A stretch of DNA of 63,711 nt, filler included, from Octopus bimaculoides (taxonomy: Eukaryota): assembly GCF_001194135.2 (NCBI RefSeq). It is 5 parts of 4 records of this genome, joined end to end, with 100 filler letters (N's around TTAATTAATTAA, not from the genome) between each part and the next. Parts side by side here need not be neighbours in the genome. Positions count along the whole stretch, not along the records: positions 29,984 to 45,101 come from NC_069006.1; 4 more parts are not named here. The stretch is one strand, 5' to 3'. How positions within the stretch are numbered: the first letter of the stretch is position 1; every line of letters starts with the position of its first letter. Below, piece by piece: positions 31,411 through 40,802 of the stretch. The notes beneath the pieces were generated by a model that was not told the origin of the DNA, ran no database searches, and was given only the letters and a program-made list of their open reading frames with translations. Both the position numbers and the translations under genes were made by a program.

Positions 31411-31456
31411 ATGGATGTTAGAACTTCCTCGACCTTATGGATTCTCTTCCTCACCA
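31411..31456 (+). CDS. Ly6/quiver-like gene A, coding exon 1 (signal peptide)
   Basis: ATG at 31411, MDVRTSSTLWILFLT plus 1 nt, perfect GTAAGT donor at 31457. The phase-1 join to exon 2 gives ACA and the signal peptide MDVRTSSTLWILFLTTQCATA. Confidence 0.8.
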
Positions 31457-31524
31457 GTAAGTTTTCTTTCAAACTTCATTTTTGGTTTACGGTTTTATTT
31501 ATGCATTTATTTATTTTTGCCATA

Positions 31525-32190
31525 ATCACCACTGCACCACAATCCTCATCAGTGATTCCTGAAGGGCCAGGGGCTTTCCCTGTCTTCATATCCTTAATTG
31601 CTTTATCTGCCAAGGTACTGTCGATTTGGATAGCTGGTCCCTCAATTGGGTCAACATTAGGTAGACTCTTCTCCTCTCATTCATTCTCCACATTCAACAG
31701 TATATTATGATGGCATTTGCAAGCCTCTTCCTTTGCAAAATCATTAAATGCAAGTGCACCATCATCCATGCGATGCGGACACATTTCTTTCCTATGACAT
31801 CATGATTTTCTCTTACACAATGTCTTGCAATCTAAAACATTTCAGTTCATTGGTCCTCACATTGCTGAACATAGGCAAACGTCTTCTTTTCTGCTTCTCC
31901 TTTGGCTAGATATATCTGTCTCCTAGCTTCCCTTCTGGCAATCTGATACAGTTCTCTGCTACCCAACTTTTCCAGGCCTGTTTCTTTGCTCTAATGGCTC
32001 TGTCTACCACATCGTTCCACCAACACATTACCCTAGGTCTGAATAGAACTTTACACCAGCCACAGTTCACCAGTCCCTGGGGCAGAATGTCATAAGGGCC
32101 ACCCTTATGACATACAGAGGTCATAAGAGCTGCTGAACATCTCTGGGACTGTAATTTTGACTCTGAAAGATATTTTAGAAAAGCTGTATA
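31525..32190 (-). mobile_element. RTE-type LINE fragment in intron 1 of Ly6 gene A
   Basis: WWNDVVDRAIRAKKQAWKSW...EKSLPNVDPIEGPAIQIDSTLADKAIKDMKTGKAPGPSGI, the region upstream of the RT core, with stops. Confidence 0.8.
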
Positions 32191-32617
32191 GCTGAGTAGA
32201 TAGAGAGTGAGACAAGTGAGGGAGAGTAAGCTGTAGACGAAAGGTGTGGGCTGCAAGAAGTGGAGAGAGAGAGAGTTATTTACAAGGAGACAGAGAAAGG
32301 TGAAGAGAGTCACATATATATATAGAGAGAGGAAGGGGATAGTATTAAATGTATGGGTAGAGAGGGGTGAGTATTAGATATGTACAGGCAAAGGGAAAGA
32401 GAGAGCTGGGAAGCGAGTCAGATATACTGTTAAAGAAAAATGTGGGGAAAAGAGACAAGGGCAAAAGGAGAGAATCAGATGCAGAGGCAAAGAGAGAGAG
32501 AGAGAGAGAGAGAGAAAAAGAAGAGAGAGAGGGGGGATAAGATATACAGAGAAAATATTAATAAGGTTCCCTTCATTGTGAATGTCTTTTAAATGCTGTT
32601 ATGTTTCTATATTCCAG

Positions 32618-32761
32618 CACAATGTGCCACAGCACTGCTCTGCTACCAATGTGAAAGCAATTTCACTCATTCAGACTGCGAAAATAATTTTAAGAAACTA
32701 AAAGAATTTGTAGTGAATTGTAAGGATTCCTACTGTGCTGTGGAGAGCCTATATGTTGATG
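32618..32761 (+). CDS. Ly6/quiver-like gene A, coding exon 2 (Cys1-Cys5)
   Basis: attccAG acceptor at 32616-32617 and GTAAGG donor at 32762, phase 1/1. Reads QCATALLCYQCESNFTHSDCENNFKKLKEFVVNCKDSYCAVESLYVD(G), with the typical LxCYxC start of the LU/three-finger domain. Confidence 0.9.
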
Positions 32762-33039
32762 GTAAGGCTGTTAGCTTTACTAAACAATGAAAATAGAAAT
32801 CTTTCAAATACTACCTTCTTCAATTTCTTAATATCTTTCTTTTTAAGGTATAACAGACACATGGATGGCTGGCTGGCTGGCTGGTAATAAGCCTGTTTTT
32901 TTAATCATGTGGTCTTGAGTTCAGTCCCACTGCTTGGCAACCTGAGCCAGTGTTTTTTCACTATAGCCCTGAGCCAACCAAAGCTTTGTGAGTGGATTTC
33001 AGAGATGGAAACTAACTAAAAGAAGTCATTGTATATTTG

Positions 33040-37091: not shown

Positions 37092-38532
37092 GTAAGAAAC
37101 TTTATAAATGTCTCTCAAGTAATAATTATTTCTTNNNNNNNNNNGTTTGTCTGTCTCACTCTGTCTGTCTGTCTGTCTTTTTCTGACCCCCCCCTCTCTC
37201 TCTGACACCCACAGCCTATCTTTCTGTCTGCCTCCATCTCTAATTGCCTCTCTGTCTCATCAGTCTCTATGTCCATCTCTCTATTTATCAGCCTCTTCCT
37301 GTTTCTCTCTATCTGCCTAACCCTGCTGTTGTTTTTGTTGTTTAGTTCCTCATTAGCCTTCACTGAGCAGACATAAGATCAAATGGCTTTAAGCCATGTC
37401 TACATCATCCTTTACCCAAACATTCTGTATCTCAGACCACATTACCTAAAGAGCCCCCTTTTGAAAACTCTGTGTGTGTGTGTGTGTTTGCGCGCGCGCG
37501 CATGCGTGTGTGCGGTACATGGATATGTGTCGCATACATGTAAGAATGTTGTTATGAGGTGAGTGAGGGGTTAATTGATTTGGTCTAAAGAAGATTCTGT
37601 CCCTGATACTCTCCCAGGGTCTCATGGAGCACTCAGCCATTTGCATCTTAACTTCACGAGCAAGCTGTTCCATATGTGCTGTATGTGTGTGTTGTGTATA
37701 TGACATCATTTTCATCATCATCATCATCATCATCATCATCATCTTCATCATTATTTAACATTCACTTTCCATGCTGGCATGAGAAGAATGGTTTGATGGG
37801 AAACTGGTGAATTGCAGGGCTGTGTTGGGCTCCAGTGTCATCTTTGGCATGGTTTCTATGGTTGGGCGCCCTTCCTTATGCCAACCTCTTTACAGAGGGT
37901 AACTGGATGCTTTTTTCCATACCTCTAGCACTAAGTAAGGTTGCCATGTAACTTACAAGACAAAAGAACAGGGGGAAAAAAGAAGAAGGACAAAGCTTCC
38001 ATTACAAAAGGGAAGTATTTGGCAGGGGAAGGTGGAGGTAGGTGGTTGTATGCCAGGTGTTGAAAGAGGGAGGGACAAGCACCGGTATCTTGTTATAGAG
38101 AAGATGAAGGAGACAAGAAGATGGTAAAGCAAACTCTCAAGGAACAAGAAAGTGAACATAAGAGACTCAAGGACAATGGTTCATGGAAGGGAATGAGAGA
38201 GTGGACGCTTTCATATAAAATATCAATATATATTGTGTATGTGTTGTATGTATGTTTATATCATTATTCAAGTTTATTTCAAGATTTCTTACCAATAGAG
38301 AAAGAGCCAGTTTCTAACCGAGATGATATTGTTATTCTGCAGCAGTCTCACAGTTTTGAGAAACACCACCACAACCACCTCCACCAACACCGTTGTCACC
38401 ATCACCACTACTCTCCCCACTACCCACTGCTGCTACTCCCCATCACCACCACTAACCCTACTTCCCTACCAAACTACTATTACTACTACCACTACCACTA
38501 CTTCTGAAAAGTTAATGTCACTTCCATTGCAG

Positions 38533-38709
38533 TTTTGAGTGTTACCAGCCTACAATGTTTTCAGTGTTCCAGCTCAGCTCCTGGTTCCAAATGTGAAACG
38601 GGCGTCAAGGAATTTGCCAAGTACAATCATTCTAAATTTGCACAAAACTGTTCTGACTTCAATTTTAAAGGCAAAGTTTTCTGTGCCATTGAAACCGAAT
38701 ATATCAATA
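38533..38709 (+). CDS. Ly6/quiver-like gene B, coding exon 2 (Cys1-Cys5)
   Basis: cattgcAG acceptor at 38531-38532 and GTAAGA donor at 38710, phase 1/1. Reads (V)LSVTSLQCFQCSSSAPGSKCETGVKEFAKYNHSKFAQNCSDFNFKGKVFCAIETEYIN(S). Confidence 0.9.
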
Positions 38710-39499
38710 GTAAGAAAGATTTCTTTTTTTCAAGCCTGTTTGTTGCTGTTGTTATTGTTGTTGTTAGGTAAGAGAGCAATGCATGCCATCAAGGGGAATC
38801 TGGAGTACAAATATCTGAAGCCCAAAATACCCACCATGACTACCAGTCTGATAAGAGTACACCCAGCACATGCATCCCAACCATATGTGCATGACATGGT
38901 GATCTCATATCAAGATAGATAGCACATGACCTTGCAGGTGGGGCCCAGTTGGAATCTTCTTCAGGTTGAGTAGTGAATCATACTCTAAAGGTCCCTGAAA
39001 AAGGGCTGTTTAAGGATGATGAATGAAACACCCATGTTTCCAAGGGTAAATTATTCAAACCCCAAAGAATCCCTCTCAATGCATGGCTATGACACCCCCC
39101 CCCCACTATTCATGCTCGCACATATCGTCAGCCACTAAGGAACATGTTCAACTCATTAAGGTGAAGCAACTGACATGTAAATCAGAATATTTGTTGTAAT
39201 CATCATCATCATCATCATCATTAATATTATCATTATCATTATTATTATTAAGGCAGTGATCTGGCAGAATCATTAGCACATCAGGCACTACATTGAGGGT
39301 TCAAATTCTGCTGAGGTCAACTTTACCTTTCATCCTTTTGAGGTCAATAAATTAAATACCTGTGAAATACTGGAGTTGGTGTAATCTGCTAGTCTCCTCC
39401 CCATAAATTTCAGGCCTTGTGCATATAGTAGAAAGGTTTATTATCATTATTATTATTATTATTATTATTATTATTATTATTATCATTATCATTATTATT

Positions 39500-39785
39500 A
39501 ATATGAGCGAGATCGTTGCCAGTGCCCCTGGACTGGCTTGTGCGGGTGGCACATAAAAGACACCATTTCGAGCGTGGCCGTTTTCGTGCGGGTGACACGT
39601 AAAAGCACCCACTACACTCTCTGAGTGGTTGGCGTTAGGAAGGGCATCCAGCTGTAGAAACTCTGCCAAATCAGACTGGAGCCTGGTGTTGCCATCCGGT
39701 TTCACCAGTCCTCAGTCAAATCGTCCAACCCATGCTAGCATGGAAAGCGGACGTTAAACGATGATGATGATGATGATGATGATGA
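39500..39785 (+). mobile_element. RTE-3'-tail repeat (same family as 43517-44478), in intron 2 of gene B
   Basis: Near-identical to 43700-43819 and 44384-44478; ends in (GAT)n. Confidence 0.8.
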
Positions 39786-40536
39786 TACTTCCGGTTGGAA
39801 GGTTAGAACAGCAATGGAAGCTTGACAGGTATTTTTGTTATCAAAACTACTGTTTTTGTTGATTTACACTTTCATTTGCATTTCATTTTATCAGTCCTGA
39901 AGGGATCAAAAGCTGAGTCAACGACGGTGGAATTTGAACTCAGAACACAGTGACCTGGAGAAAGTACTGCAATGTATTTTGTGAAACGCTTTGATTACTC
40001 AAGTAATAAATTGACCACAAATGGGAAGGAGATCACCGTGACTGTCTAGGAGAGGTAGAGAATGAGGTGCAAGGAAAAAGGGGACAAGAGAGATGGAGTT
40101 TAAATGAGAGGCTATTAGACCATAGAAATTGTTACCTGGCTAAAGATCAAACACTAAATGGCAATATGGATGAGTGACCCTAATGACCACAAGTGGTTTG
40201 GCATTACTAATGACCACAGATTCATCCTCAATATAATATTGATTTCAAATTTTTCCACAAGGCCAGCAATTTCAGGGGAGAAGGTAAGTTGATTACATCA
40301 ACCCCATTGCTCATCTTGTACTTAGTTTATTGATCCCAAAAAGGTGGAAGGCAGAGTTAACCTCAGCAAAATTTGAACTCAGAACATAAAGACAGACAAG
40401 TATTTTACCTGGATTCTGCCAGCTTGCCAACCTCATTCACAGTAATGATTGTGAACTAACAATTCCTTGTAATTAACAAAAATTATAATTAACTTATCAA
40501 CACTTTTAAAACATTCTTCTTTTTTTTATCTCTTAG

Positions 40537-40802
40537 GTAAGAGTTCATATTTGATTAGGGAATGTTCAGATGGAGAAACTTTCACCTTCAATAGGAACTT
40601 GGATAATTTCCAGAAATTAAAATACCTTAATCCTGAAAAAAACACAACACTATGTACCTATCGCAATGGCATATTGTGTTTGACAACATGTGAAACAGAT
40701 TTTTGCAATGGTCCTCAAAGTATGGCTGTGATACATTCACACATACCTGCATTGGTCATTACCTTAGCAATAGGCGTTTTGGCTTTGTTGCCGTCATACT
40801 AA
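40537..40802 (+). CDS. Ly6/quiver-like gene B, coding exon 3 (Cys6-Cys10 plus GPI-type signal)
   Basis: Polypyrimidine tract then tcttAG at 40535-40536. Reads SKSSYLIRECSDGETFTFNRNLDNFQKLKYLNPEKNTTLCTYRNGILCLTTCETDFCNGPQSMAVIHSHIPALVITLAIGVLALLPSY*. Spliced CDS is 498 nt = 165 aa plus stop, with 10 mature Cys. Confidence 0.9.

Follow-up and report, generated by a model that had tools for sequence, protein, structure and literature searches.

Two probable LU-domain genes of quiver type in Octopus bimaculoides and the octopod array to which they belong

When the coding potential of a locus appears only as scattered fragments, are there genes behind the fragments and, if so, of what family and how new? 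This question is raised by positions 29984-45101 of our window of Octopus bimaculoides DNA (a stretch of 63,711 nucleotides joined from five parts of the genome; all coordinates given without an accession or contig label are window positions). In a preliminary description of this piece, which has a G+C content of 37% and four internal N gaps, a hidden tandem pair of three-finger genes of the Ly6/uPAR, quiver-like kind was proposed. Our analysis indicates that the piece very probably holds two tandem paralogous genes, hereafter gene 1 and gene 2, each encoding a single LU domain of the quiver/sleepless (Pfam QVR) type. They belong to a more extensive tandem array, which appears to have diversified within octopods out of a mollusc-wide gene family. 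Both can already be found in public databases, with these very exon models, under the name 'Protein quiver', which is an automatic family-level label. What may be a new point is the missing 7-8 disulfide in the conserved, single-LU gene 1 lineage.

Two three-exon genes, their products and their fold

Gene 1 (LOC106879159) lies on the plus strand, and joining 31411-31456, 32618-32761 and 33906-34189 gives a 474-nucleotide (nt) open reading frame (ORF) for a protein of 157 residues. The first of these exons, 46 nt long as in its orthologue in Octopus sinensis, holds the start codon, opens the signal peptide with its first 15.3 codons and is followed by the donor GTAAGT. Exon 2 (144 nt, phase 1-1) completes the signal peptide and encodes Cys1-Cys5, with finger 1 and the opening strand of finger 2, with cleavage predicted by simple rules between ATA and LLC. 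Exon 3 encodes Cys6, the segment KMKHLNAETNIT with a conserved sequon, a third finger without Cys7 and Cys8, the ending C111-x4-C116-N, and the tail, in which a spacer precedes a 20-residue hydrophobic stretch, eight polar residues and the stop.

Gene 2 (UniProt A0A0L8G5W9), also on the plus strand, is built in the same way from 37037-37091, 38533-38709 and 40537-40802, which join into a 498-nt ORF for 165 residues. Its exon 1 carries the start codon and 18.3 signal-peptide codons, and exon 2 (177 nt, phase 1-1) carries the signal-peptide end (VTS before LQC), Cys1-Cys5 and a longer loop 1 with, in the structural model, a short helical insert. In exon 3 are found Cys6-Cys10, the segment KLKYLNPEKNTT (with a modelled helix at 100-107 and the sequon N113), the motif CETDFCNGP and the stop, the latter preceded by what looks like a typical glycosylphosphatidylinositol (GPI) signal, judged by simple rules from the small residues S-M-A, a seven-residue spacer and a hydrophobic end. 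The ten cysteines of gene 2 are C27, 30, 39, 58, 69, 87, 117, 125, 129 and 134; ten cysteines in a stereotyped order, spread over 60-90 or more residues, are a mark of the LU superfamily.

The earlier proposal of two same-strand, three-exon genes with GT-AG, phase-1 introns was thus accurate; the coordinates join into clean ORFs in both cases, and all four introns begin with GTAAG, end in a polypyrimidine tract and AG, and are in phase 1. It was likewise correct that the ORF track shows only fragments, a prokaryote-style ORF list containing just pieces of the exons. The motifs that had been quoted, together with the signal peptides and hydrophobic C-termini, are all present in both proteins: LLCYQC in gene 1 and LQCFQC in gene 2, CAVE and CAIE, RHCSNG and RECSDG, the two long segments given above, and the end motifs CNKDYCNGP and CETDFCNGP, with hydrophobic segments at the N- and C-termini of each. 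The two proteins are 28% identical (E 3e-19). In both, Cys10 is followed by Asn (C116-N117 in gene 1, C134-N135 in gene 2), a column that is invariant in our alignment of 61 family sequences.

LU domains have been defined by ten cysteines with an Asn after Cys10, and by genes with three coding exons, phase-1 introns, a signal peptide split by intron 1 and a GPI signal in the last exon (PMC6600238). Gene 1 and gene 2 fit this gene layout. Gene 1 also matches Pfam QVR (PF17064) over the full length of the model with 34.1 bits (E 5.8e-8), above the gathering cut-off of 27.3. For gene 2, we base QVR membership on its homology to gene 1 and on the finding that 42 of the 61 aligned family members match QVR.

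The fold of gene 2 was modelled with AlphaFold2 from the 61-sequence alignment, with a predicted local distance difference test (pLDDT) score of 88.6 and a predicted TM-score (pTM) of 0.78. The model contains three beta-hairpins (26-32, 68-88 and 115-129), short helices in loop 1 and at 100-107, and a hydrophobic C-terminal helix. When it was compared with the PDB using Foldseek, the top matches were all three-finger folds (probability 0.99-1.0; target-normalised TM-scores 0.5-0.67), namely uPAR, the ectodomains of TGF-beta RII and the activin receptor, GPIHBP1, Lypd6b, C4.4A and Lynx1 (2l03). As modelled, then, gene 2 has a three-finger fold. The assignment to Ly6/uPAR three-finger genes of quiver type, with signal, finger and anchor exons, is in this way borne out by the Pfam QVR matches, by the PDB matches of the gene 2 model and by the published gene layout (PMC6600238).

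Comparison with better-known systems indicates where the two genes stand. They share with Drosophila QUIVER/SLEEPLESS and with Pfam QVR the single LU domain, the ten cysteines (in gene 2), the Asn after Cys10, the signal peptide and the GPI-type tail, but the relation is at the family level only. Gene 2 falls under the Pfam cut-off, and in the mollusc proteins a long stretch that carries a modelled helix and a conserved sequon separates Cys6 from Cys7. Mammalian Lynx1/Ly6 prototoxins have in common with them the three-finger fold (as modelled for gene 2), the three-coding-exon phase-1 layout, GPI anchoring (putative in the octopus products) and an organization in tandem clusters (PMC6600238). 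Sequence similarity to this group (Pfam UPAR_LY6) is, however, marginal, and in gene 2 Cys8 and Cys9 are three residues apart (C-LTT-C). In CD59, by contrast, Cys8 and Cys9 are adjacent (CC).

How new are these genes? The description of them as hidden has to be withdrawn, since both exact products carry public 'Protein quiver' entries. The protein of gene 1 agrees exactly, over its whole length, with XP_014784084.1 (LOC106879159) in RefSeq and with UniProt A0A0L8G4M0, and the gene 2 product is 100% identical, from first residue to last, to UniProt A0A0L8G5W9.

A mollusc-wide family with an octopod expansion

The second question is how far the family reaches. A profile of the octopod members, searched against 1.84 billion representatives, retrieved 129 proteins at E<=1e-3 and 63 at E<=1e-10. 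We looked up the sources of 20 of these representatives and found Argonauta, the gastropods Lottia, Haliotis, Gigantopelta and Bulinus, and the bivalves Potamilus, Argopecten, Ruditapes and Ostrea; other looked-up representatives were transcript-like contigs, together with P0037, from a sand-fly assembly, whose match is limited to a short repeated stretch. Exactly ten cysteines are present in 58 of the 61 aligned relatives, and the residues that are invariant or nearly so (in gene 2 numbering) are the cysteines, R85, N113, N135, G136 and P137. Of the 61 members, 60 retain the N-x-S/T sequon immediately ahead of Cys7. The family consensus also retains IE after Cys5, RxCSDG and LxPxNxTTC, so that the motifs shared by the pair are largely family features; they are indeed present in both proteins, as had been observed, but do not serve as a signature of the pair.

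The mollusc entries named 'Protein quiver/sleepless' (for example V4B7G5 and V4A6F8 of Lottia gigantea and A0AAE0SZM8 of Potamilus) fall in the same subfamily, with profile E-values of 6e-20 to 3e-18, and have in common with the octopus genes the ten-cysteine spacing, RDCSDG, N-x-T-x-C and CxTDxCNGP. They differ from the octopod genes in that the latter form their own clade and are tandemly expanded, and in that the loss of Cys7 and Cys8 is limited to the gene 1 lineage. In a neighbour-joining tree, which is unbootstrapped, the octopod sequences of gene 1, gene 2 and gene 3 type make up one clade apart from the gastropod and bivalve sequences. This octopod clade, taken with the paralogous exons in O. 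sinensis (below), makes the expansion look lineage-specific, while the family does not. The suggestion of a lineage-specific subfamily therefore survives in part: the family reaches gastropods and bivalves, and the tandem expansion alone looks octopod-specific.

Within the octopods the pair can be followed gene by gene. LOC115224715 of O. sinensis is 90% identical to gene 1 and LOC115224798 is 84% identical to gene 2, and the two lie in the same order on CM016884.1, downstream of a gene for a 4952-residue protein with LDLa and Ig domains. Their exons measure 46, 141 and 284 nt for gene 1 and 55, 177 and 266 nt for gene 2, which are the sizes found in the window apart from one lost codon. This codon corresponds to a single 3-nt in-frame insertion or deletion (indel) in exon 2 of gene 1, an exon that is otherwise 97.2% identical between the species. 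Between O. bimaculoides and O. sinensis there are no frame-breaking indels in the exons and several in most of the flanking intron stretches. Intron 1 of gene 1 (31457-32617) is 1.2 kb long in O. bimaculoides and 6.8 kb in O. sinensis (L001 10047-16830), the two being alignable at both ends only.

The O. sinensis cluster contains more than the pair. Two intact gene-2-like genes, g2a (L003 10001-16759) and g2b (L002 10001-20373), are situated about 65 kb apart, both with a 177-nt exon 2 like that of gene 2, and at least six further exon-3-like units are spread over about 140 kb. In Argonauta hians, one entry of gene 2 type and one of gene 1 type carry the consecutive accessions GAB1602193 and GAB1602194, the gene-1-like entry being a fusion of two tandem copies. 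Since Argonauta has entries of both types, the pair predates the Octopus/Argonauta split.

A homologue of 164 residues, P0009, which is of the gene 3 type, is encoded without introns on contigs of about 1 kb from ten sequencing runs; the Logan contigs carrying it include L005-L008 (SRR19578112, SRR25158157, SRR25158148 and SRR20545808). These mRNA-like contigs show that one family member is transcribed and spliced. P0005 and P0002 had no exact record in the contig index.

Several of our results weigh against the reading of both genes as conserved LU-domain genes of QVR type, and they are best considered together. First, the profile searches that had been suggested as a check gave a divided answer: QVR is positive for gene 1, but gene 2 reaches only 23.6 bits (E 1.1e-4) against the cut-off of 27.3, and UPAR_LY6 (PF00021; cut-off 24.8) is negative for both, with 20.8 bits (E 5.5e-4) for gene 1 and 7.8 bits (E=6) for gene 2. 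Second, the structure prediction proposed at the same time succeeded for gene 2 but not for the gene 1 type, where the AlphaFold2 model of the O. sinensis orthologue has a pLDDT of 44; this model carries no information because its alignment had seven sequences only. Third, the Foldseek E-values of the gene 2 model are weak (about 1e-2), and a PDB sequence search with the family profile returned nothing relevant. Fourth, the ratio of non-synonymous to synonymous substitution (dN/dS) of gene 2 against O. sinensis is 0.74 (11.5 synonymous and 32.5 non-synonymous changes), which is not significantly below 1 (p=0.20). Finally, transcript-like contigs were seen for the homologue P0009 only and not for gene 1 or gene 2. 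With these points taken into account, we still consider it very probable that the two genes are tandem paralogues with one LU domain each.

With both genes already public and the family mollusc-wide, the finding is correct but ordinary. To our knowledge, animal Ly6 genes as a rule lie in tandem clusters that evolve fast. As gene discovery the result has little weight; it does show that short spliced genes can be rebuilt correctly from raw sequence.

The gene 1 lineage, membrane anchoring and possible roles

What distinguishes gene 1 from its relatives? It has eight domain cysteines because the 7-8 pair is missing, with Y98 and A107 at the positions of Cys7 and Cys8. The same two cysteines are absent from the O. 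sinensis orthologue and from both gene-1-like copies of Argonauta, and from no other of the 61 aligned members; we refer to these four sequences (O. bimaculoides LOC106879159, O. sinensis LOC115224715 and the two Argonauta copies) as the gene 1 lineage. Loss of the 7-8 disulfide is described as very rare among LU domains, its removal from single-LU proteins leads to unstable, aggregated protein, and the bond has been called indispensable (PMC6600238).

One explanation would be that gene 1 is a decaying or non-functional copy whose protein, deprived of this bond, no longer folds. Such a scenario would account for the substitution of both cysteines being unique to this lineage, for the low confidence of the gene 1-type structure prediction and for the identity of only 28-36% between gene 1 and the Argonauta copies, and it is in keeping with the published instability of single-LU proteins from which the bond was deleted (PMC6600238). 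Nevertheless, we find that: (i) both O. bimaculoides and O. sinensis retain an intact three-exon ORF with intact splice sites, together with the eight remaining cysteines, the sequon and the Asn that follows Cys10; (ii) both Argonauta copies, as judged from protein sequence only, likewise keep the domain ORF and these residues; (iii) dN/dS between gene 1 and its O. sinensis orthologue is 0.42 (10 synonymous and 16 non-synonymous changes), with a synonymous excess at p=0.036; (iv) gene 1 scores above the Pfam QVR cut-off and (v) the low-confidence model, built as it was from seven sequences, is uninformative. Decay of gene 1 is thus quite improbable, and we reject it.

We give roughly even chances to the claim that the gene 1 lineage encodes a working single-domain LU protein, which would have been without the 7-8 disulfide since before the Octopus/Argonauta split and would have no compensating cysteines. 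There is precedent for LU domains without this bond, as it is absent also from the N-terminal LU domains of uPAR, C4.4A and Haldisin and from the TGF-beta RII ectodomain, and uPAR and TGF-beta RII are the structures that the family model matches best. Those domains, however, occur in multi-domain proteins or have extra disulfides (PMC6600238), whereas gene 1 is a single LU without compensating cysteines. If the claim is true, the gene 1 lineage would be a natural counter-example to the 7-8 bond being indispensable in single LU domains (PMC6600238), and it could mean that the third finger is flexible and stabilised only by partner binding, as has been proposed for uPAR domain I. For LU-domain specialists the missing disulfide poses a small, concrete structural question.

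How might the products reach and remain at the cell surface? In our working model, the precursor would enter the endoplasmic reticulum and the signal peptide would be cut just before L-x-C (after ATA in gene 1 and VTS in gene 2). The domain would then fold around five disulfides in gene 2 (1-5, 2-3, 4-6, 7-8 and 9-10) and four in gene 1 (no 7-8), with N-glycosylation at the sequon that the family shares immediately ahead of the Cys7 position (N94 in gene 1, N113 in gene 2), and the hydrophobic C-terminal propeptide would be swapped for a GPI anchor. GPI anchoring of both products is judged from simple rules only, which counts against pressing this step of the model. For gene 1 the anchor type is ambiguous because the hydrophobic stretch of 20 residues is followed by eight polar ones, a tail that also allows a transmembrane segment.

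It is also conceivable that the products are secreted rather than membrane-tethered and serve as soluble ligands or as venom or salivary toxins, in the manner of SLURPs or snake three-finger toxins. The LU fold is common to secreted toxins and SLURPs, and rapid evolution with tandem duplication resembles what is seen in toxin families. However, both proteins end in a hydrophobic segment of 14-20 residues after a short spacer and small residues, which is typical of a GPI signal and absent from secreted LU proteins, and the same hydrophobic tail runs across the mollusc family. The Pfam model Toxin_TOLIP, which stands for snake-type secreted toxins of 60-75 residues that lack such an anchor signal, scored only 8.9 bits (E 3.3). 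We regard secretion as very unlikely and retain the membrane-tethered model.

By analogy with QVR/SSS and Lynx1, a surface-tethered three-finger ligand might bind the extracellular part of a membrane protein in cis and tune its trafficking or gating; the targets of QVR/SSS and Lynx1 are Shaker-type K channels and nicotinic acetylcholine receptors (nAChRs). QVR/SSS binds Shaker and nAChRs via loop 2 (PMC4735452). For the octopus genes, a role as ion-channel or receptor modulators is a tentative suggestion drawn from this analogy. LU functions are very diverse, extending to septate junctions, fertilisation, complement control and lipase transport, and the ion-channel analogy for that reason has low specific support, a point that tells against it. 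An alternative that we hold to be possible to a similar, limited degree is that the same molecules do another job, in epithelial or glial septate junctions or in cell contacts, like Drosophila Boudin, Crooked, Coiled and Crimpled. These are also single-LU, GPI-anchored proteins (PMC6600238), and nothing in the octopus sequences ties them to qvr/sss rather than to Boudin-type proteins, the 'Protein quiver' name being automatic; against this alternative, no one-to-one insect orthologue was seen among the 20 representatives that we looked up. As there are other single-LU proteins with tasks in fertilisation or in building septate junctions (PMC6600238), the partner is not readable from sequence.

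The preliminary description had gone further in naming nAChR-family receptors, including the octopus chemotactile receptors, as possible targets of modulation, which is speculation by analogy with Lynx1 and QVR/SSS. The nAChR-like chemotactile receptors are greatly expanded in octopus, and cis-acting three-finger modulators would therefore be a reasonable candidate class, as a hypothesis. Our literature search found no paper on these genes or on cephalopod LU genes, and none linking Ly6/Lynx proteins to chemotactile receptors; a catalogue of cephalopod LU genes with expression data would accordingly be new descriptive work.

Assembly gaps, exon copies and repeats

A last question is whether the assembly can be trusted across this piece, which corresponds to about 23.105-23.120 Mb of O. 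bimaculoides chromosome CM046626.1 (GCA_001194135.2) and is identical to it base for base, with the same gaps, over the 14,206 positions compared (29984-44189). No exon or reading frame of either gene crosses a gap. The gap of 443 N at 36224-36666 is intergenic, between gene 1 and gene 2; the 10-N gap at 37135-37144 lies within intron 1 of gene 2; and the gap at 40818-40968 begins 15 nt past the gene 2 stop and conceals the start of the 3' untranslated region. For the first two, the flanking sequence has the order and orientation found in O. sinensis, with which it is colinear. The O. sinensis equivalent of the intergenic gap is a stretch of about 1.3 kb, and at 37135-37144, where both flanks are colinear with g2a and with g2b, about 0.1-0.2 kb is hidden. 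GCA_001194135.2 has the same contigs and gaps as our piece and is thus no independent witness to continuity across the gaps or to the second exon 3 tail described below.

Could gene 2 be a chimera produced by misassembly, with exon 1, exons 2-3 and the downstream sequence drawn from different paralogues across the gaps at 37135-37144 and 40818-40968? The concern arises from the two gene-2-like copies 65 kb apart in O. sinensis: stretches of the gene 2 region are alternately closer to g2a or to g2b, the window is colinear in its upstream part with the g2a side but in its downstream part with the g2b side, the exon 3 tail occurs a second time just past the gap at 40818-40968, and the newer assembly, being made of the same contigs and gaps, is no independent check. 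Yet g2a and g2b differ from each other by only 2, 7 and 10 mismatches in exons 1, 2 and 3, whereas the window gene differs from them by 13-16 in exon 2 and 24-25 in exon 3. With the O. sinensis copies more alike in exons 2 and 3 than either is to the window gene, gene 2 has the appearance of one co-orthologue of both, which would stem from a later duplication in O. sinensis. The colinearity of the intron 1 gap flanks with both copies points in the same direction, as do the exon sizes and the 165-residue product, which equal those of O. sinensis LOC115224798, and the same exon 1-exon 2 junction in a RefSeq isoform (X2, from the same assembly). A chimeric gene 2 is therefore unlikely, and we have largely rejected it in favor of one co-orthologue.

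The second exon 3 tail, at 41302-41494 on the plus strand, is a truncated copy of 40610-40802 comprising the last 63 codons and the stop. It differs at 7 of 193 nt from the window's own exon and at 17-18 from either O. sinensis copy; it has no acceptor site and an in-frame stop lies just upstream of it. The first copy continues directly into the gap at 40818. Either a recent partial duplication (a pseudo-exon) or redundancy in the assembly would explain the second.

In RefSeq, exons 1-2 of gene 2 form the first exons of LOC106879162, the X2 isoform of which splices them (37037-38709) to exons 2-3 of a downstream paralogue beyond 45101. The same kind of fusion, of exons 1-2 onto the exons 2-3 of a downstream paralogue, is annotated in isoforms X1 and X2 of O. 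sinensis LOC115224789 (L002 10001-50168). Such joining is possible because exon 2 is in phase 1-1, and the fusion product has an odd number of domain cysteines (15). We think that these isoforms are probably read-through or model fusions.

Six other long ORFs in the piece, outside both gene models, have no Pfam support, and a scan of the piece for tRNA and Rfam families gave no matches. Simple repeats occur near the genes. Runs of (TA)n at 36186-36223 and 36667-36743 border the intergenic gap on both sides, which places the gaps within microsatellites. The gene 1 stop is closely followed by an (ATAG)n array with about 40 copies of the unit (34230-34387), and intron 2 of gene 1 includes a 66-bp unit repeated three times (33333-33535). 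There is in addition an interspersed repeat family, with no tRNA, Rfam or Pfam signal and with many copies at the O. sinensis loci, that occurs at 39505-39780, 43594-43819 and 44364-44481 and as an inverted copy at 37726-37914. Within this family, 39663-39780 is 96% identical to 44364-44481, and 39505-39620 and 43704-43819, the latter ending against the gap at 43820, are 100% identical.

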